The position numbers and the translations under genes were made by a program. Shown here piece after piece: positions 2,791 through 59,980 of a DNA stretch of 64,000 nt. The DNA comes from Bigelowiella natans CCMP2755. Its lineage: Eukaryota; Protista; Cercozoa. The first letter of the stretch is position 1, and each line of letters opens with the position of its first letter. A model generated the notes under the pieces. That model was not told where the DNA came from. It made no database searches and saw only the letters and a list, made by a program, of their open reading frames with translations. The stretch covers positions 38,887 through 102,886 of the forward strand of contig ADNK01003372.1 in NCBI GenBank assembly GCA_000320545.1. The letters run 5' to 3'.

Positions 2791-3929
2791 TGCATTCTTT
2801 TCATCATATTAGGTTGTGGTTCACTACGTTTGTTCGGAGAATTTTCAAGCATCAGTGGAGGGAATGTGATGCATGAAATGGAAAGCTGGTACAGTGAATG
2901 ATTCCGTTGTACTTCTTCCATTTCTGAGTAGAATTCATTAGATGTGAAATTTGTAAATCCATGAAGGTTAGTTTCAAATTGACGCATCTTCGTCATTTAG
3001 TGCATGGCAATGAATGCCATGTTGTTTGGCACAGTCAACTTGCGCTTCTGTTTCACAGTGAGTTCTTCTCACGATGATGGCGTCATCATATCTGAGCTCA
3101 TTGCTGCAGCGCACAAGGTAGCAAGGCCAAGATTGGGTGCATGCACTTGGCCCGCAAGTTCGATCATTGTTTGCTTCTTTTTTGGAGAAGCATTGTGAAT
3201 GACTGATGCGCAACATTGTTTGTGCTGTCATTCGCGCCACAACATGCATGATGTGCGCGAGTGCATCGAAGTTGACTCCACATCGATCCCCACATGAAAA
3301 TGCACACGAACGGATTGATCAGACGATGCGACAATCGGTGCATGCTCACAACTCATGCTGTCAGGCTGATCTTGCCAGCCACTTGTGATGGCTGTGCACT
3401 GGCCGTGGCAAACCTTCTGTTTGTTTCAATGCGATCTCAGCTGCTGCGTGGCTGGCTTGCACACTGCCAGACTTTGGGACTGCTAGACGACTAGCTGAGG
3501 CACTGCTGCAATGTGACCTGGTTGGTGATGGTGAACGCGCACACAGAACAAACAAAGCACACCTGCCAGGTTCGTGTCCAACAGTGACCCTTGCATGTCC
3601 AGGTCCACAACCACATGTCGACGCATGTCAATGTGTCCTGGCGCTAGCGCCACACCAGCAACGCAGCAGCGCTGCGCAGCGCATGAAAATCGATCGCAGC
3701 GCTGATGTGATCGCAATGCAATCATTTTGAAACACATCATCAATCACATTTCTCCATGTTGGCCATGTTTGGGTCACAAAGCTAGCTGTGGAAGCCCAGA
3801 AATCAGCATGAGCGTGCACACACACACACACACACACGCACACACACAAACACACACACGTGCAGCTAGCAGATGCACCTGGACAATGGAAAGGATGAGA
3901 AGTCCCGTGCTCCGCAAAATTCCAGCGTC

Positions 3930-5128
3930 TCACCATCTGAAAGGTGAAAAGAAGTTCACTGACGAAGTGAGCAAACACACACCTGCATCAGCAATGCCAT
4001 CAGGCCACACGTTCGCTTCGAGCTGAAACTCGAGCTCATTTGTGACAGACACAGCAACACAAAAAGCAGCAGGAACCTTGCCTCTGATGGTTTTGTCAAT
4101 GAAACTTCGCTTCTGACTGACACTTGGTGCCACCACCACAGGCTGGGACGATCTGACTCGATGCTCATTGATGCATGCAAGCTGCTGGTTCGAAGAAGAT
4201 TTTTCCTTGCTCTTCCGATTTCTGATTGAATGCATCACAGATTGAGCAGTGAACGTTGCTTTGATTGGTTTCAACAATCAACTCACCTTTTGGAAGCTTT
4301 CTCAGCTTTCTTGGCGTTGAGCTCCTGACACTTTGGCCTTTGTTCAGCATTCAATTTGGTGGAGCAAGGCACAAGATTTCCAGGAAAGCGGAATGTCATT
4401 CTGCTCTTCGATGCAACCCTTTCCGTCCCTCGAATGTCAATCTGTCGAAGTGTTTGACTCTTCCACATCACCTTCACGTTTTTTTCATCAGCGTGAGACT
4501 TTTGAATGTGAATGCAACTGCAATCTCTCCTCTTCAAAGGATCCAATCCACACATCCTGCGAATCACTCAACTTCCCTCGTTGGGCTCAATGCCGAGTGC
4601 TTCTGCCAGCTTGTTCGATGTGTCTCGTTGCCTCTCACCACCTGTGGTTGCCAACAGGACGTCTTCTGTGTCATTGCTCTCCACTTTCGCGCATCCTTTC
4701 CAAAGTTGGAGAAAGTGTTCCTTCGACATGGGAAGACTGAAAGAAGCTGTGGCTCTTTTCCTGAGGGTGCATCTTTTCAATGCCTGCTGTGCTCCAAATG
4801 CCACATTGCAAATTGTGGCCCCCAGTCCGTGTCCATCGCATTTGCAGCTTTGTTTCTCCTCGAAAAGCGTCTTGCACACTTTGCGTGAAATCCTGCGTGT
4901 GAGATGACGACAATTCTCTCTCCTTTGGAGTTTTTTTTCGCATCTTCGAATTGACAGTGGGGCATTTTTCAATTCCAATTCTTCCCTTTGCTCTGCTGCC
5001 AGGCGAAGCGCCCTTGGGAAACCTCGGCTCCGTGCAATCCGAGCTCGAGCCCCATCCCCCCCCCATTCTTCCTCGCATCCTGTGCGTTGGGTCCACACCC
5101 ACCCACCGCTGTGCCAAACACCTTTCAT
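3930..5128 (-). pseudogene. Degenerate second gene of the element, unknown function, divergent from the transposase
   Basis: Chain of protein-like, Tyr-free ORFs (4568-5128, 4283-4567, 3930-4277) separated by TGA stops or frameshifts. No firm family assignment. Confidence 0.35.
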
Positions 5129-5163
5129 TCAAAAATTCGCTCAGGTGAAATCACATTGAAAAA

Positions 5164-5567
5164 GAGTTGATGACGGATCAGCAGGCCCCATTTTTGCAGA
5201 TGACGACTTTCCATGAAAAATCCAGCGCGTTCAATTTCAACTCTTTTTTCATGCGGACTTCGGCATTCGCTTGCTCTGCGCCTGCTGATTGTCCATCTTT
5301 GTGGGACAACACAGGCTTTGAAAATTGAAAGAGCCAAGACAAATTGAATTTTCATGAAAGTGTGGCGGGAACTCTCGTTTCATGTGATGCAGCAATGCTT
5401 GCACAAGTCCCCCAAAACTTCACACTGCGCAGGCGCAGGTGACAGCAGGAGAAGCGAATGTCGAAGTCCGCGTGAAAAAAAATTGAAAATTCGTGGTGCT
5501 GGCACATTGCAAAGTTGCTGTTGCTCAGGATCAGAGGGAATGGGGGCTGCTGATCCGTCATCAACTC
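5164..5567. repeat. Imperfect inverted repeat (about 120-bp arms) between the two divergent element genes
   Basis: GAGTTGATGACGGATCAGCAGGCCCCATT at 5164 matches the reverse complement ending at 5567. TTTTTTCATGCGGACTTCGGCATTCGCTT (about 5244) matches the reverse complement at about 5452-5481. Confidence 0.85.
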
Positions 5568-5873
5568 AAAAGTGTCCGAATTGACACTTGTCAACCTTTT
5601 TTTTCATTCAAAAGTTCGGAGGCGCCTGCAATGGGGCGAAGGCCTCTCATGGCCGTGGAAGAGGCGATGAATCTGGTGAAATTGCTTTCCCTGCCTCGAG
5701 CAGGAGAACACAAGGTTCGATGAAAATGCAGTGTTCGATTTGATCTCTCTTGCGAGAGAAAAAGAGAATTGTGTTTTGATCACTTTGTGAGTTTTCGGTG
5801 TTGGTTTGTTGTGTTCATGACAGCCACTTGTGCATTCTGAGCAGACGTTCCCCTGGCTTCGGACGGGATTTCG

Positions 5874-8654
5874 ATGTTGCGAAGGATCACGTCCTTCGAA
5901 TGCAAGGGACACCATGGCGAAAACCCACGAGAAGACCCTTTGCTTGGTGCCAGGTGCAACTGTGATGGGAATTGTGCTTCCGGAAAAAAATCAAAGAAGA
6001 TGTCAGCCGAACTTCGTGCTTCGAGCGCTCGGGTTTCGGGGTGGAAAGAGAAAGCCACCGAGGCACTGTCGCAGGTTGATGAGGTGAAAAAAAATTCCAA
6101 CGAAGCTGACATTGAATTGAAGCTGAGCAAAAAGAGAGAAGCTCGGCCAAAGAGGCAGCTAGAAAAATCGAAAAAAGAGCTTGCACGCGCCCAAAAAGAG
6201 CAAAAGGAGGCTGTGATGCAGCGCACCGATGCCATTGCTTCAGCCACTGCATCCAGAGCCAAAGCGAGGAAGCTCACAGAAAAAGTTGAGGCTCTCATCT
6301 CAGAAAAGAAACAGAAGTGCTGAAGCTCGCCATGTCAAGAGATGGAGATCGCCAACAAAAAGTGATGGGTGCTGCCAGCTTCAAGCTCAAGACTCAGAAG
6401 TCCAAGTCGGAAAAGCTCCTGTCATCCCTCAACAGCAAAGCCACTCAGCTCTCCATCCAACTCCAGGCATCGAAGTCTGCTGCGAAAAAGAATTCAGAAG
6501 AGTTGTCGAAGCTCAAACGCAAGCATCAAGTGGTGTCAGATCGTTCCAAAAACAGAGGGAGAGCTTTGAAGAAAATTCGAGCCAAGCTCTCTTCAATGAA
6601 GCAAGAAGTGAGGAGTTCGTGTTTGATCATGGGTCCAAAACGCAAGCTGAAGGATGATTCCAAAATCAAAACGCACCGCTTTGATTGCGCGCCGCAAAGC
6701 AGCAGAAGCTGAAATTTCTCGCTTGACATCTCGGGTGGCAGAAAAATGGTGCATGCAGCTCTCTGGATGTGGAGCATTGGAATTCGCTGCTGAAGAAGAG
6801 TGCTCCGTGAAGGTGGCTTTTCGAAAAGGCACCAAAGCAGCTGATGTGGTTGGCAAGTTTTTGCATTCAGTTGGTGGTGGACCATCGAAAAAAAAACTTC
6901 ACGAAGTTCGAATGCTCTCGCATGCTGTTCCATCCACGTGCTCGGTCAAGAAAGTGCAAGACAAAATGGATTTGGCCATGTGACAGACACAGCAACAATG
7001 GAGTCCATGTTTGATCCATCTTTTGATGCTCATCACTTCGCAGTGCATCCAGAGAAGTGTTTCAAGCACACTTTTGAGCATCGAGGGCTCGAAAATCACA
7101 CGACGCATGACGCACTGCTCGAAGGTGATGGGCGTGGAACAGGGAATTCTTTCAAGTCTGTCACATTTCAATTTGGAATTCTCAATGAGGGCCGCCCAAT
7201 GCACAGGGAGGACAGACAGTGCGTGTTGGCGCTGCTTGTTGGGGATGGAAATGGACCGATGCTTCAAAAACATCCAACTCCGTTGTTCACCAAACTCAAG
7301 GACTTGCAAGAGTGTGGCTTCACGTGGAAAGGGTGCCAAAGGAAAGTGGGGCTGCACCACACTGGAGACGCAAAATGGATGAAAATCATCCACGGCATGG
7401 TTGGTTTCCACTTGAAAAACCACAATGACTGCTTGCACTGTCACTGTCATGCTGAGGACAGAGCGGACACGACTGTGAAGTGGGCCACAGAAAAGCAGCG
7501 CTTCTCGGGACCTCTGAAAGAGTGCGGAAGGCAGCACAAAGATCTTCTTCCATTGTGTGCCAATGGAGCGTCGCTGGAGTGAAAACATGCACCTCGTGTT
7601 TCGGTTTCTTCGTGATGAGATCACAGCTCGTGTGTTCACTGACATCACAAACACAGAGTTGGGCACCCCTCAGGAGGGCATGAAACAGACAGAAAACGAC
7701 TTGCAAGCAGCTCCATTTGACATGACCAAGTTTGAGTTCAGGGCGTGTGAGGTGAAAGACAGATCAGCAGTGGGAGGATTCACTTGGGCCACTCCGAAAA
7801 TGGCGAAGATGCTGCAGATTTCAGAGGAATGGGACTTCGAACATCTGTGCAAAGTCAATCCTGGGAGAGGCGAGCCATTGCAAAAATCGGCAAGAAGCTG
7901 GGTCAAAATGCATCGCAGACTGATGGTTTGGCCAGGAGACGGGCCAGAACTGACTTGTGAAGAAACATGGAAGGAGCATTCGGATTTCATGGAGGCGCTC
8001 ATGGAAGAAGGGTGACAACAACGAACAACATGCATGCACATGTGCAGTGTGAGTGTGCGTGTGTGTGCAATTCATGACAATCATCACGTTGAAAATTTTC
8101 ATTTGTGTGTGCTTGTCAGAAATGGAGAACCAGGCATGGATGACGTGGAGATGAAGGGTCTTCCTGGCACGATTGTGACTCCTTGTTGTGCTCACACTTG
8201 GGTCAATCACATGGGGGAGCAACACGGAAGAAGTGCTGCTCATTCCAACCACTTTTCAGAGAATCCTGGACCAATTGAATCAAACATGGATTCTGATGAC
8301 TCATCTGATGAGGTTCAGGAGCTGACAGCTTGCTCAGGCGGGCTGAAATTTGCTCGGACAGACGCACTTGAACGGAAAATTTTGGCGTTTTTTCACAGTT
8401 GTTTTCAGACACTTGGCAGGCGAAATGATCATGTCATGCCAGACGCCGGGTTCCAAGAGCTCAGGAAACTCATCAATCCACACAAAAGTGGCAGCTCCAG
8501 TGGACACAAACATTGGTGCGAGTGGTGCGGCAAAGGACACGTTGGAAAAAAATTTTGCGCAGCGCATCAGCTCGAATGTGCCCAAGCACCGTGGACAGCA
8601 TTGCAATTGTCATGCATGATGCACTTCAATCACATTTTGGCAACGTTTGTGTGA
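5874..8654 (+). pseudogene. RAG1/Transib-like DDE transposase relic with N-terminal coiled coil and C-terminal Zn finger; frameshifted, one clear intron
   Basis: Motifs in RAG1-core order: EGDGRG (D at 7127), ALLVGD, TGDAKWMKIIHG (D at 7367), CxxC (7430-7441), LLPL/VPM..ENMH, VTP.(.)AHTWVNH (H-x4-H, 8193-8210), GGLKFARTDALERK (E at 8370). GT..AG intron 8012-8119 joins the frames. Frameshifts near 6320, 6680, 6980 and 7555. Confidence 0.75.
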
Positions 8655-9765
8655 CATCTGATGGCTTCAATGTCAATTGCAGTGATTTTTCCATGCATGT
8701 CCCATGCGCTTGCTGCTGGTGCAGGCTCATTTTGACATGCGTCGACACATGAATGGAAAACGAACAAAACTTGTTCACAAGATTTTGTGGCACGTGCCAC
8801 CGACCCGCTTCAAGCAAATTGCGATCGATTTTTCGAAAGCTTGCCGCCTGCGCAACGCTGCAGATGAGGCCTTGCCTCACACGCACACTCGTCTAGTCGT
8901 GGTTGCCGCGCCAGTGCAGAGCAAAAGTTCGTCACGTTCCTGACAGCTTTCCTGAACTTTGATGACCAGTTCACTTTTGAGCACTTTCCATCTGCACTCA
9001 CACCAGACTTGTCAAAACCAGAAAAACGAACAAAAACCACGCGAAAAAGGTGCGGCAAGAGCTTGCAAAGTCTGCAAAAAAAAACAAAATCCGAGCAAAA
9101 TTGCAGCCAAGCAGGTGTCAAGACAAAACTTGGTGTCACCACAACAACAGACACCCTGACCCTGGCAGGTGTGAAGTGGCAAAAAATGGCTGACGCACGC
9201 ACTTCTTCCCCGCGTAAGTGACGAGACCACGGGACAACCGCACGAAAAGAAGGGTCGATCACAAGTGAATTGCAAGCTGAATGAGTGATTGGATGAGTGA
9301 AGAAGAAGGCGAAGTGCACGTGCGAGTGAAGTTGAAGTGCCCACGGGGCCCCAAGCCAGAAAGGTGGTTTGCAAGACAGAGCAAACAAAGTTTCCAAGCG
9401 GCGATGTGTCTGATCGAAAGGATCAGGAGTGCCGTGCCAACTCATCCACTCCCTTCCCCATTGACAAGGCAGCCAATGCAGGGAAAGTGAAGGCTGAGAG
9501 AACGACCGTGAGCTGGCGGTGCGCGTGCGTGCAGCCCGCCAGCCCGGAAGTCAACTTGCCAGCAGTTTGGCGTTGATCGATCGAACGTGCGATGTGTTGT
9601 CCATGACTAGATGATTCCGAGATGACGATTGAAGCTTGTTTCTCATCACTCTTTCCCCCCATCATCATCGTCGCCATCGTTTTCGTGAACAGCAGCCAGC
9701 TTGCAGCAAGCACGTGGGTGTTCTTCGAGTTGTCGCAGTGGAAGAATGGCAGCAGGTTTCCTTCA

Positions 9766-11143
9766 ATGGACGTTGTCGCAAGTGGTTTTTCGCTTCTATT
9801 TCAAAGTTTCTCGCATCGCTTCTTACGTTGTGAATACCAACGCTTATTAGTAGATCTCTCAGTTTGCCCCCCTCCTCCTCAAACGAACGAAGATGGGACA
9901 GGTTCAGTGCTGTCGAGCTCATCACCACGGAGAAAAACCAGCGGATTTGAACAGCAGGGTTATCCTATCTGTTCTACTCTGTCGAATTCACAAGGACCTA
10001 ATGCTTAAAAAATTCCTGAGGAACAACAACTACATCGTTTACTAACATCCTTCTTTCTCTTCTTCTTGTAAGGTTACTGACTGGGAGGGTAGCGAGAACA
10101 AGGATGACGGACCTCCCATCCCAAGTGGGGAGGTATTAAAGCCCGAAACTAAAATTTTAACGCCTAAATCTGCAAAGATAATACATTCGCGGCACGTCTC
10201 TCGAGGCGGGAAAACTCCAGCATCAAGCGTGTACATCTGTGCAAGCAGCGACGATGAGGAGGTATAATACCAAATAGTGCATAAATTCTCATTTGATATT
10301 TTATTTTTTAAGTTAAAATGCTGTGTTTTTGTGTGAATTGGCGGGGAGAATGCGATGATAAGAAGGTTATTTATATGGTGCAACTACTACTTACTTACTA
10401 GGGCGAGAATGTGCTACCACCACACAGAATGAGTGGCCAAGGTGGCATTGAATCCCGCTCTTCTACAAGCCGTAGTACCTCCCATCATAGTCGTCGTCCC
10501 TCACAAACAGCAACATCAGGTTGGTAAATGAGTGGTGGTAGTAATAGTAGTAGTAGCTGTAGGATATAGTCATACCTGAAAGTAAATGTGCTATCATTGC
10601 TGTAGGATATAGTCATACCTGTAAGTAAATGTGCTATCATTGGGCAAAAATGATCCTCATTTGTCCTTCTTCTCTCTATAATCTTGGATACACATATCAT
10701 TTTTTCATGGTTAATATATGGAGAATAATCGTCGATATCTGCTGCATCGCGTATTATTATAATTCTTGTTATTATTATTATTACTATCGTTTGTACATAA
10801 GGAGAATAATCGTCGATATTCGCTGCATCGCATATTAATATTATCTTTTTTACACTTTTATACTTTTTCAATGAAAGGAGGAAATATTTGCCATATGACT
10901 CAATATAAAAAACGAATGCTTATGACGAATAGGCGCTACATCCATGGCAGAGACTACAAATATCGAGGCTTCTTTTGCTCGACTTCCAAGCCGGATGGAT
11001 TTGGACGCCCTTCACCTTGACTCTCCTGTTAACCGTCGAGATCCAAAAGGAATAACGGTGCAAACTCCAAAATTGCCTACTGCTGGCAAGAAATGGGTTA
11101 CTACTAGCATTATTATAAAATCAGAACTACATCATAGTACATA

Positions 11144-22079: not shown

Positions 22080-23260
22080 AATGATCAAATGTGCAACAGA
22101 TGATAGACTGACATGCATGATCTTCCGGGCGTTCACGTTGAGTCGCTCATGTGCAGCGCCAGTCAGCACGCACTCGCAAAATCTTCGCGAATGATGCTAG
22201 AATGCAAGAAACTTCCACTGCTGGCTGTATGATTCCAGAATTTCCTGGCACAGTTCCTTTGATGGGTTCCGCCGAGACCCAATTCACCAATGCGTATGCG
22301 CACACACAGCATGCTATGCATGAAAAATCCCAAACAAGTGTGTCAAGTGCTGGCAATTTGCATGAAGAACACTCAAATTAGCTCTGAGCTTCACTGCTCT
22401 AACACTGCTGTGGACCACCACAGCAATCACAGACTCAACTAGTCAAGTAGTAAATGTCTGCAATGCGTGTGTCCACAGACTCATTGATGTCTTTGACAAC
22501 GCACTTCACTAGATCATGCAAGCCACGCTAGCACGCGCTACGCACACGATTCTGGGACCATCGATTGGCCACGTTGCAAAGACGTTCGTGCCTCCTAGCA
22601 AACCTCATCAATCAACCAAAAGATGATGATGCAGCACACGCACAGCACACAGCATACTAGCATGCATGCGCGTGCATGTGCGAAATGGCGTGCACTGGTG
22701 CACTTTGGCACTCTAGCACTCTCTAGCTCTGCACGTCCTGCATGGAAGAATGCAGGCTAGCAGGTAGCAGGCTAGCAGGTGAGACGCCTGCTGCCAGCAG
22801 CCCAGTCAGCTAGTTGACTAGCTGTGCGCTGATGCACGCACGCGCCGATCGAATCGAACGCAGGCGGTGGCAAACACAACTCTCAAGGGAGCAGAGTGTT
22901 TCCATGCAGGCATGATCATCATGCAATCAACAAAGCTAGAAAGGCCGCCACCATGCCAACTTGATCACGTTTCCACAGATCTAGAGATCTAGATGCACGC
23001 GGCTGCGCTGCGCTGAGAAGTTGAAGTCGCCTACAGCGGCCCATGGCTGCGTCTGACGCACATTTTCATCACAATGTGCAACATGCATGCGAAAGAAGAT
23101 GACAGATTCGAGAACTTTCAAGACCAACGATCGATCTCATGCACGCCTCACTTGATCATGCTTGCTGCCAACCAGCGGTGCGTTTTCATCATTTCCTTGT
23201 GCTGTCAATTTTGTCCATTTCTTCTCAATGACAAGCATGAATGGCAGCATTGGGTCTAGA
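22080..23260. mobile_element. TpA-erased, CTAG-rich island 3
   Basis: About 15 CTAG in 22439-23260 and only a handful of other TA. Graded depletion over 22080-22460. Confidence 0.65.
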
Positions 23261-28944: not shown

Positions 28945-29740
28945 CTAGTTCGAGGCACTGCGTTTCGCACACTGCCAATGTCTTGCAACATTTTGGAAGT
29001 GCAGTTCATCATCATTGTTCATTGTTCACTGTCAAGAATTTGCGATGTGGAGAATGGCTTGTCGCAGGCACATTCGTTCAAGAATGCAGTTTGTCAGCCA
29101 CATTGCTGCGTCCTCACTGAAGACAGTTGGAGGCACTGCATTTCGCACACTGCAAGTGTCACGTCACACTTTGGAGATGCAGTTTTTCATCGTGTTTGTT
29201 CTCATTGTTTGTCACACTTTCGAAGTGTGGTTTTTCACCATTGTTCTCATTGTTCTCATTGCTGCGTTGTGGCCAGAACACCAATCTCAAATTCAATTGT
29301 CTCAAATTCCTCCTGGTTTCTCGACAGTGGTGGTGTGCGCGTGGTGTGACTGCGTGCTCACACGTGCGACGACCTTCCATTTGTCCTTCCGTCGTGCCCA
29401 ACTGGCCAATCTGGCAATGCAAGTGAGCCACTGTGGACACAGTGTGCACACTGCTCAGTCTGTTGCAGCCACAGAGAAGAAACCTGTGGACCGCAAACCC
29501 TTTTCGATCGTGCTGCCACCTGGCCATGCTGGCATGCACGCCTGGCTGTCTTGACCTCCAAACCTGGTCATCGATCAAGCGTGCGTGCGTGCTCAGACAC
29601 CAAATCGTCAACTTGCACAGTCAGCGTGTGGCAGTGTCCATTTTGGCAATGAACAATGAACAATGAACAATGATGATGAACCACACTTCCAAAGCATTGC
29701 AAGACATTTGCAGTGTGCGAAACGCAGTGCCTCGAACTAG
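28945..29740. mobile_element. MITE/non-autonomous TIR element, about 800 bp, with about 85-bp TIRs beginning CTAGTTCGAGGCACTGCGTTTCGCACACTG
   Basis: First 31 bp of the left arm match the reverse complement of the right arm exactly. Internal degenerate copies of the arm lie at about 29127-29260. No TA except the terminal CTAGs. Confidence 0.85.
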
Positions 29741-59299: not shown

Positions 59300-59980
59300 A
59301 TCGTGCATTGCGGCGCTAGGAGCAGCGCATGGTTGCTGTCATCAAGTCGCAATGATGACGCATGATGTGCTTCGTTCCATGTGGGATGCGACAACTGTGG
59401 CTCAAGGTGGTGAACACAAACCTCATGAGTGCCAACGAATGACTCACTGGCTCATTTGACGCATCGATCGCCCCGATCTAGCGATGCCATGTGTGCAATG
59501 AAACGCCCATGCACGCGTGCTTGCGATGCGTGCCGCGCTCGGCCAGTCGCTGTGAGCAACTCCAGACCATGCTGGCATGGCAGAACAACACATCAAAACA
59601 AAATGAACCAGTGAAGTCCCACGTGCGGCAGATTCAACATTGGCGCTGTGGGTGCTGATTGCACAGCTGCATGAACATTGAACAAACTTGATTGATCAAT
59701 TGCATCCGTCTTGCACGCTGCGAACTGCACGCAGCAGCATGCATCGATCGTGGCAATCGGCATGCATGACCACCACAACCACCACATGTGTGGCCGCGTT
59801 GGTCACAACAACTGTGCATGCAGGCACACAGCAACCAATCAGCAGCAAAATGCCACTCCGTCAGTCCGAACATGCACACATCTGCACATGGACGCAATCA
59901 AAAGCAATCATCTAGATCATCACTGTCAAAGTGCGACTTCCCAGTTGAATTTTGAGCGATGTTCTTCTTGAAACTTCGAC
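59300..59980. mobile_element. TpA-erased island 6
   Basis: The only TA in 59300-59980 are three CTAG (about 59315, 59478, 59912). Partial depletion over 59130-59300. Confidence 0.7.

Follow-up and report, generated by a model that had tools for sequence, protein, structure and literature searches.

A RAG1/Transib-like transposon of Bigelowiella natans with erased TA dinucleotides and former tyrosine codons that read histidine or cysteine

The transposon and its TA-poor domain

The stretch of DNA analysed in this work (the window) comprises 64,000 nucleotides of contig ADNK01003372.1 of the rhizarian alga Bigelowiella natans CCMP2755. It contains one copy of a DNA transposon (the window copy) that is bounded by terminal inverted repeats (TIRs) and carries two divergent genes, one of which codes for a transposase. 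The element is the relic of a RAG1/Transib-like transposase, and the stretch at 8511-8579 is its C-terminal C2HC zinc finger. The forward-strand translation of that stretch, HWCEWCGKGHVGKKFCAAHQLEC, is identical to the peptide given in an earlier reading of the DNA that used its letters alone (the sequence-only reading). It was proposed there that conserved tyrosine codons in the finger and in the transposase core now read His or Cys, and that the ancestor had TA dinucleotides that were lost by T to C and A to G changes. The features of the locus are shown in Table 1.

Table 1. Features of the transposon locus in the window.
Feature	Position	Strand	Remarks
TpA-erased domain	3120..9796	.	6.7 kb; 9 TA left, 8 of them inside CTAG
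RAG1/Transib-like DNA transposon copy, TIR to TIR	3612..8751	+	5.1 kb; about 4.56 kb when its two nested insertions are removed
5' terminal inverted repeat	3612..3632	+	CACATGTCGACGCATGTCAAT
165-bp insertion	3818..3982	.	absent from other copies; begins with a (TG)n-like tract
Second gene relic, ORF2	4275..5150	-	divergent from the transposase; open over 292 aa in the C218 copy
Nested 404-bp miniature inverted-repeat transposable element (MITE), between the two genes	5164..5567	.	TIR GAGTTGATGACGGATCAGCAGGCCCC; 3-bp target duplication
Transposase exon 1	5874..8011	+	N-terminal coiled coil, then RAG1-like core
Cys codon TGC of RQCVLALL	7220..7222	+	column Tyr in 11/11 Tyr-normal homologues; His in three Tyr-poor paralogues
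Inferred intron	8012..8119	+	108 bp, GT..AG; contains an in-frame TGA at 8013 common to all copies
Transposase exon 2	8120..8654	+	TxYxHxxxxH zinc-ligand motif, ALERxN motif with third acidic residue, C-terminal finger
TGT TGT codons of VTPCCAH	8184..8189	+	8184-8186 is a 3-bp duplication without counterpart in C218 and C406
C2HC zinc finger, C-x2-C-x12-H-x3-C	8511..8579	+	CAT 8511, CAC 8538 and TGC 8556 identical in 5/5 copies
3' terminal inverted repeat	8731..8751	+	ends ...GACATGCGTCGACACATG

The transposon lies in a domain from which TA has almost disappeared. The domain exhibits a rho(TA) of 0.01-0.11 and values of 1.2-2.0 for rho(CA) and rho(TG). In the 1-kb scan from 4001 to 9000, the observed/expected ratio is 0.00-0.02 for TA and 1.25-1.9 for CA and TG. 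The transposon itself (5140 bp) has four TA left (rho(TA) 0.01, rho(CA) 1.53, rho(TG) 1.54), and consecutive TA in the region are spaced 2293 and 2734 bp apart. CpG is moderately depleted (rho 0.63-0.90), with 187 CG remaining versus only three to four TA. The erasure also overshoots the TIRs by about 0.5 kb on the left (3120-3611) and about 1.0 kb on the right (8752-9796). The left flank is single-copy in the genome and the right flank is nearly so, with only short matches of 73-78% identity.

As TAA and TAG are gone, all six frames are open and 40 open reading frames (ORFs) of at least 80 aa occur in 8 kb. A frame that is chosen by eye therefore needs outside support. The reading frame of exon 2 (codons from 8121) is genuine, because it scores 128 bits against a hidden Markov model (HMM) of Tyr-normal homologues only and aligns to these homologues along its entire length. 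The motifs LHHTGD, RQCVLALL, and IIHGM are located in the ORF at 6938-7582, and VTPCCAH is located in the ORF at 8034-8654. Exon 1 of the window copy has four frameshifts (+5 near 6297, +1 near 6668, +20 near 6997, and +1 near 7555).

Sister copies of the element with 88-95% identity were identified on contigs C406, C218, C1847, C3043, C2605, and C453. An insertion of about 5.6 kb, itself free of TA over more than 4 kb, interrupts the C218 copy (L008:4644-8851 / L022). This copy carries the transposase gene as an open frame of 791 aa with 0 Tyr, 32 His, and 26 Cys. No Tyr is found in about 970 codons of the element.

Tyrosine columns, sister copies and the direction of mutation

The homologues were identified by an exhaustive HMMER search with the protein core of the C218 copy, which gave 49 relatives. 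Eleven long relatives are Tyr-normal (2.2-3.6% Tyr), and others are Tyr-poor. The sources of the Tyr-normal homologues are metagenomes and the Logan assemblies of public runs, and these 11 sequences (alignment A2) served as the reference for the Tyr columns. One of the relatives, P0001, is the EukProt/JGI Bigna1 gene model 146380 and is 83% identical to the C218-copy protein.

The sequence-only reading had called for a tally of the residues that stand in columns conserved as Tyr, and it predicted almost exclusively His, Cys or Arg there. Seven columns reach 70% Tyr or more, and the element reads Cys in four of them and His in the other three. His and Cys together make up 8% of the compared columns, and 7/7 is thus far beyond chance. 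When the threshold is lowered to 50% Tyr, His or Cys occupies 10 of the 12 columns; the exceptions are one Met and one Gly, where the two closest homologues likewise have no Tyr. Phe never replaces Tyr at the Tyr columns, as was anticipated, and the Arg (CGY) expected from a double change occurs three times. Many of these columns are likewise His or Cys in the Tyr-poor paralogues. ORF2 has four well-aligned columns that are Tyr in both Tyr-normal homologues; the C218 copy exhibits Cys in all four, and the C1189 paralogue exhibits Cys, Lys, His, and His.

The second line of evidence comes from the sister copies, which have 0-11 TA each in an alignment of seven. In 133 pairs of adjacent columns the copies show no reading other than CA or TG, and in another 16 pairs CG or TA occurs as well, which gives a total of 149. 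The window copy and the C218 copy alone differ by CA versus TG at 95 sites. Twice this count, or about 190 former TA sites over 4.5 kb, is near the normal TpA frequency of B. natans coding sequences (0.041), so most of the erasure would have taken place after the copies separated. TA was lost independently in each copy. At the protein level, 19 codons vary between His and Cys among the copies, and 16 of these can be aligned to homologues, where most fall on Tyr or aromatic columns (including 953, 1090, 1096, 1099, and 1149).

The same discordance is found at the ends of the element. The inverted repeats that bound the window copy at 3612 and 8751 read CAYRTGTCGACGCATGTCAAT. The third and fourth TIR positions vary across the copies (CA, TG or CG), and the tips of the mutated copies read CAYRTGTCGAC, whereas unmutated relatives of three families read CATATGTC. 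The relatives therefore suggest that the ancestral tip in B. natans contained a TA, and at all nine B. natans termini this TA has been erased to CA, TG or CG. A reading of the tip as CACGTG that decayed through its CpG was also considered and was rejected, because the unmutated relatives show CATATG. The intron acceptor (8113-8119) is split in a similar way. It is CAG in the window copy and in C218, and TGG in C406, C3043, and C2605. This split points to an ancestral TAG acceptor, of which one outcome kept the AG and the other destroyed it. The reading frame resumes at 8120 and leads into the finger-bearing part of the protein.

Reverting His and Cys codons to Tyr was also proposed in the sequence-only reading as a check by HMM score. 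With an HMM built from the Tyr-normal core alone, the gain was confined to exon 2. Changing the six copy-discordant His/Cys of exon 2 to Tyr raised the score from 128.0 to 150.4 bits, and changing six random non-discordant His/Cys gave 114.9 +/- 7.4 bits (maximum 132.1). The 10 copy-discordant codons of exon 1 were neutral (415.1 to 415.4 bits, +0.3), with random replacement at 403.7 +/- 7.7 bits (about -11). Blanket reversion of all His and Cys lowered the scores from 415 to 383 bits in exon 1 and from 128 to 109 bits in exon 2. The drop indicates that most His and Cys residues are genuine. The two exons of the transposase were used separately in the searches.

The third line is a published experiment in the same organism (Mettrop et al., bioRxiv 2026, 10.64898/2026.01.13.699255). 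According to that preprint, 231 of the 302 new mutations in a mutation accumulation experiment with B. natans fell in nucleocytoplasmic large DNA virus (NCLDV) and virophage inserts, and these insert mutations were almost all A>G or T>C, all on TpA, giving TpG or CpA. The preprint gives 211 events on 6169 TA in 3132 line-generations, from which our own arithmetic gives a rate of about 1e-5 per TA per generation and a half-life of about 6e4 generations. At that rate, copies that have diverged by about 4-5% at other positions are expected to be erased completely. It also lists 324 TpA-depleted coding sequences, which are enriched for DDE endonuclease, reverse transcriptase, and a zinc-finger domain, as well as 124 depleted clusters in the genome and a candidate deaminase that resembles ADAT2; the authors propose adenine deamination, with A converted to inosine that is read as G. 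The organism, the loss of TA with gain of CA and TG, and the A>G or T>C changes at TpA are the same as in the present locus. The difference is that the de novo events were recorded in inserts that still contain many TA, whereas the present DNA transposon is completely erased. Hardly any TA is left at the present locus as a target for new mutations, and the contigs of a DNA run from 2025 mix its paralogous copies.

The Tyr columns, the discordance of the sister copies and the published experiment are three independent lines, and they confirm that the change of TA to CA or TG explains the Tyr codons that read His or Cys. The direction of mutation stated in the sequence-only reading (TA ancestral, lost by T>C and A>G) is thereby upheld. 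The mutational process and its direction have already been published, and the present work confirms them (Mettrop et al., 2026). The words tyrosine, transposase, RAG1, Transib, and CTAG do not occur in the text of the preprint, and the Results sections consulted contain no copy-by-copy discordance analysis. The new findings in this work are the consequence at the protein level, the use of copy discordance as a method, the constraints from CTAG and strand symmetry, and a two-gene family with CATATG tips.

It is very probable that the locus holds a dead two-gene RAG1/Transib-like transposon whose TA dinucleotides were erased by the TpA hypermutation of the host after dispersal, with its Tyr codons turned into His and Cys codons. 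The copies of the family would have dispersed first, and a TpA-specific hypermutation of the host would then have converted nearly every TA in each copy. A TG outcome would arise where the A of the top strand was changed and a CA outcome where the A of the bottom strand was changed, in a ratio of about 1:1, while TA inside CTAG would largely survive. Each TAY codon for Tyr would thus have turned into a codon for His (CAY) or Cys (TGY), or in rare cases for Arg (CGY). The scars would have hit two invariant tyrosines of the core, one of which is the equivalent of RAG1 Y935 beside the zinc ligands, and the TA of the TIR tip. We infer the mutator enzyme, the intron and the erasure after dispersal at most sites.

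Former tyrosines, the zinc finger and alternative explanations

About half of the individual sites that the sequence-only reading had named as former Tyr codons stand. Two of them are solid. Reversion of the Cys in RQCVLALL (7220) gains 6.2 bits. The second Cys of VTPCCAH (8187), the equivalent of RAG1 Y935, gains 6.5 bits in a column that is Tyr in 11/11, and its codon at 8187-8189 reads TGT, TGT, CAT, CAC, and CGT across five copies. The His of IIHGM is ambiguous, with a gain of 0.7 bits, Tyr in 4/11, and His in the closest homologue P0002. The proposal failed for LHHTGD (-0.8 and +0.1 bits), since the first His is invariant as His and the second column is variable and has no Tyr.

For the finger, no more than a third of the proposed reversion holds. 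It is plausible for H10 (8538), which lies on an aromatic column (Tyr 5, Phe 5, Ala 1) and gains 3.7 bits. H1 (8511) is ambiguous, with +1.8 bits, Tyr in 3/11, and His in P0002. C16 (8556) loses 0.5 bits, with Tyr in 1/11, Cys in P0003, and His in four homologues. Homologues that carry His or Cys at the reverted columns had been named beforehand as evidence against the proposal, and this is what the closest Tyr-normal homologues exhibit at H1 and C16, so the reversion of the stretch is not supported in the form proposed. Judging from these comparisons, H10 (CAC 8538) is likely the only former Tyr within the 23-residue stretch. The stretch also holds one clear scar of hypermutation at codon 8544, where the window copy reads GTT followed by GGA and C218 reads GTC followed by AGA. 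This pair points to an ancestral T followed by AGA (Arg), which agrees with the Arg of P0002.

Several observations weigh against erasure after dispersal by a TpA mutator as the full account of the locus. No matching 5-mers that could be a target-site duplication were found around the three full copies, whose flanks are diverged and hypermutated; the Logan contigs of the relatives are untrustworthy across the element ends, which affects this search. The intron has no RNA support among the only 18 reads over 5.9 kb. Four of the 10 Tyr-rich columns are concordant among the copies, and our own estimate for a star tree is about 1.25. Part of the erasure may thus be older than the dispersal, or the independence of the copies may be incomplete. 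In the finger, 5/5 copies agree on CAT, CAC, and TGC and none of these codons is CA/TG-discordant, for which the chance is 1/16 per site if each codon was TAY at dispersal. P0002 has His at H1, and at C16 P0003 has Cys and others have His.

These finger data bear on an alternative in which CAT 8511, CAC 8538, and TGC 8556 are ancestral codons and not former Tyr codons, and the change from Arg to Gly at 8544 is the sole scar in the stretch. We lean slightly towards this explanation. The ex-Tyr codons of exon 2 outside the finger are mostly discordant among the copies, and in the part of the gene covered by five copies, these disagree at seven ex-Tyr codons and agree at one (7911, Tyr in 10/11 homologues). 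Independent resolution predicts less than one concordant ex-Tyr codon, which makes three more in the finger unlikely. The residues of P0002, P0003 and the four other homologues at H1 and C16 and the small HMM changes at these two sites point the same way. Against it, the H10 column is strictly aromatic (Phe in the Tyr-poor paralogues) and no Tyr-normal homologue has His there, the consensus of the family profile emits Tyr at H1 and H10, and the clear ex-Tyr codon 7911 is likewise concordant in five copies.

The other alternatives concern the erasure as a whole. Avoidance of TA might have been selected, through evasion of an activity that cuts or inserts at TA or through avoidance of TAA and TAG stops, with the Tyr-less transposase functional. 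The open frame of 791 aa that the C218 copy retains and the TA-poor consensus of the nested MITE family would fit such selection. However, an open frame is expected anyway, since TA to TG or CA creates no stop, and the same sites are resolved as CA or TG in different copies, which selection acting on a master copy could not bring about. The erasure has destroyed the TIR tip and invariant Tyr residues of the core and enters the single-copy flanks, the window copy has four frameshifts, and the locus is nearly silent in RNA (18 reads over 5.9 kb). We regard selected avoidance as very unlikely. A contig that had been presumed to represent RNA of this locus is the C1847 copy instead.

Editing of an RNA intermediate from A to I by an ADAR-type enzyme, followed by reverse transcription, would also yield A to G and T to C changes, and ADAR enzymes prefer a 5' U. 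This explanation is extremely unlikely, because the element is a TIR-bounded DDE DNA transposon that retains its inferred intron, and the erasure spans the TIRs, both strands equally, the nested MITE, and the single-copy flanks. The loss is near-total and strictly dinucleotide-specific, with CTAG alone spared, and the experiment of Mettrop et al. (2026) shows that changes arise in the genomic DNA of cultured lines. The probability that the CA/TG excess and discordance come from the decay of methylated CpG instead of TA is negligible even with the depletion of CpG and 66 sites that are CG versus TG or CA among the copies, because this decay predicts 0.9 discordant sites between the window copy and C218 (an expectation derived from the CG/CG and CG/one-step counts of this pair) where 95 are observed, 187 CG are left against three to four TA, and the discordant His/Cys codons align with Tyr and not with Arg (CGY) in the homologues.

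Family assignment, relatives and constraints on the mutator

No Pfam family was found for 10 ORFs of the window, the 791-aa frame of C218, exon 2, the C1189 paralogue, and 10 homologues. A profile search against the PDB with the full-length alignment was swamped by coiled-coil matches and was repeated with the core only. The core profile matched mouse RAG1 (E=2.6e-4) and amphioxus RAG1L (E=0.013). The residues D101, G102, E141, D181, K183, G190, C201, C204, H254, R258, D262, Y417, H419, H424, E473, N476, R504, C522, and H535 are invariant in 16 Tyr-normal homologues. In the alignment to RAG1, D181 corresponds to D708 (DxK), C201/C204 to C727/C730, Y417/H419/H424 to Y935/H937/H942, and E141 to the glutamate of LADES. 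The zinc site is therefore recovered, with C201/C204 and H419/H424 invariant and aligned by HMMER to the RAG1 ligands C727, C730, H937, and H942. The DDE candidates D101, D181, and E473 are all invariant in the 16 homologues, and D181 is the only one that is aligned residue-to-residue (RAG1 D708). D101 and E473 presumably correspond to RAG1 D600 and E962, by motif resemblance rather than by residue-level structural alignment.

The AlphaFold2 (AF2) model of P0002:280-829 has a predicted local distance difference test score (pLDDT) of 85 and a predicted template modelling score (pTM) of 0.85. With this model, Foldseek gave RAG1 as the top match (E=1.7e-10, template modelling score (TM) 0.52-0.58), with HzTransib at E=4.8e-8 and BbRAGL at E=5.3e-8. 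There were 48 matches with E of at most 0.001, of which all those listed are RAG1, RAGL or HzTransib, and the next fold is the P element (E=3e-3). The label RAG1/Transib-like, which the sequence-only reading had given, is supported by the profile and the structural matches, and the T-x-Y-x-H-x4-H motif that it cited is correct.

The label of a C2H2/C2HC finger is also borne out by the spacing read from the sequence and by the profile of the family, whose C-terminal finger matches the C2H2 fingers of PRDM9 (E=1.9e-7) and other C2H2 fingers. Strands and a helix (a beta-beta-alpha unit) are predicted at residues 516-538 in the AF2 model of a homologue. The finger shares the C-x2-C-x12-H-x3/4-C spacing with classical C2H2 fingers and differs from them in its last ligand, which is Cys, in standing alone at the C-terminal end of a transposase, and in the His at the aromatic position after the second Cys. 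The window copy has His at -2 of Cys1 and at +4 of Cys2. In the 11 homologues, the +4 position is Tyr or Phe in 10/11 and the -2 position is mixed (Tyr 3, Phe 3, His 1, others 4).

The element resembles RAG1, Transib and RAG-like elements (ProtoRAG, AanRAGL) in its RAG1-core fold, its invariant D, D, E set as a candidate catalytic triad, its CxxC and YxHxxxxH zinc site, and its TIR boundaries. However, the tips of the unmutated relatives read CATATGTC and not CAC..., with only the leading CA in common, and no heptamer like that of a recombination signal sequence is present. Other differences are that no 5-bp target duplication was seen at three full copies, that the tested members have no Pfam family, and that the protein has a coiled coil at its N-terminus and an additional C2HC finger at its C-terminus. 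In contrast to the transposons with RAG1L and RAG2L, the companion gene is divergent, codes for 250-336 aa, and has no detectable RAG2/kelch similarity. RAG-like elements have already been reported in the unicellular alga Aureococcus (PMC9435367). Our literature search found no paper that names both Transib and Bigelowiella, and B. natans is not named in the supplement of the 2022 paper on the origin of RAG.

ORF2 is conserved in the C218 copy (L022:5047-5922:+), in the C1189 paralogue (L023:5002-5877:+), and in the unmutated relatives (249-336 aa). It gave no match to Pfam and no profile match to the PDB, including RAG2, and no kelch similarity was detectable. Its AF2 model is of low confidence (pLDDT 57) and is helix-rich and not a propeller. 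The C1189 paralogue (L023, 1-9000) is a second RAG1-like element in the genome with 48% protein identity. It is also almost TA-free and has a 707-aa frame with one TAG interruption and its own ORF2.

The relatives outside the genome include the Logan contigs L030-L035, L025, and L026, which are 4.15-4.46 kb long, have a rho(TA) of 0.62-0.77, end in CATATGTC, and carry a divergent gene of 249-259 aa together with an intronless transposase. Judged by their sequences, they appear to be complete and intact. Three paralogues poor in Tyr (L027, L028, and L029) lie on ENA/JGI metagenome contigs with a rho(TA) of 0.12-0.19, and the TA that remain on them are mostly in CTA or TTAA. A profile search of the B. 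natans genome recovered only the present family and the C1189 paralogue and did not find L027-L029. These three contigs seem to come from other organisms that bear the signature, and the erasure of TpA may also operate outside B. natans. The occurrence of two-gene RAG1/Transib-like transposons in a rhizarian alga, and of intact relatives among public reads, is relevant to the early evolution of RAG-like elements.

The outcomes at the inferred TA sites constrain the mutator. The three long copies resolve the 149 sites to CA and TG in ratios of 76:71, 63:76, and 72:74, or about 1:1. Runs tests for strand runs among the outcomes were not significant (P 0.07-0.88), and neither the base 5' of the T nor the base 3' of the A influenced which strand had changed. 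The residual TA lie within CTAG in 20 of 26 cases in seven copies (L007, L008, L022, L009-L011, and L018) and in 8 of 9 in the domain of the window. Changes on either strand are seen at CTAN and at NTAG sites, which leaves the complete CTAG palindrome as the only slow or protected context. CTAG sparing, 1:1 strand outcomes, the absence of clustering and the spread into the flanks are constraints on the mechanism beyond the preprint.

The family consensus of the nested MITE is TA-poor, and in an alignment of 10 copies TA, TG or CA stand at identical sites. The subfamilies share site states, so partly erased copies apparently kept transposing.

In the genetic code, TAA becomes TGA or CAA and TAG becomes TGG or CAG, and no sense codon becomes a stop. 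Since TA to TG or CA never makes a stop, long open frames persist in dead copies. For the same reason, TpA-depleted gene models with open frames may be dead genes; Mettrop et al. (2026) list 324 TpA-depleted coding sequences. TpA-free DNA cannot encode Tyr, and proteins that lack Tyr and are rich in His and Cys thus mark hypermutated genes. The CA/TG and His/Cys discordance among sister copies allows ancestral TA sites to be recovered with no outgroup.

Repeat-induced point mutation (RIP) of fungi is a dinucleotide-specific scarring of repeats and foreign DNA that consists of transitions only, leaks into flanks, makes TpA from CpA, and creates stops. The present erasure is also dinucleotide-specific and transition-only and spills into flanking DNA. 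It differs from RIP in that TpA is destroyed (the opposite direction), no stops are made, and the outcomes are strand-symmetric and unclustered. A single-copy NCLDV insert was also targeted according to Mettrop et al. (2026), so duplication is not required, unlike in RIP.

A broader picture can be drawn, although we rather doubt that it holds as a whole. The mutator would act on duplex DNA, TA by TA, with no strand preference, processivity or dependence on a single flank, would be blocked only by the full CTAG palindrome and reach up to about 1 kb beyond the element into unique sequence, and would also be present in other, uncultured protists. Its victim would belong to an undescribed RAG1/Transib-like two-gene clade with CATATG tips, which other marine organisms would still carry in intact and apparently active form.

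Other short TA-free patches were identified in the 64-kb window at 23032-23257, 28946-29738, and 59479-59913.

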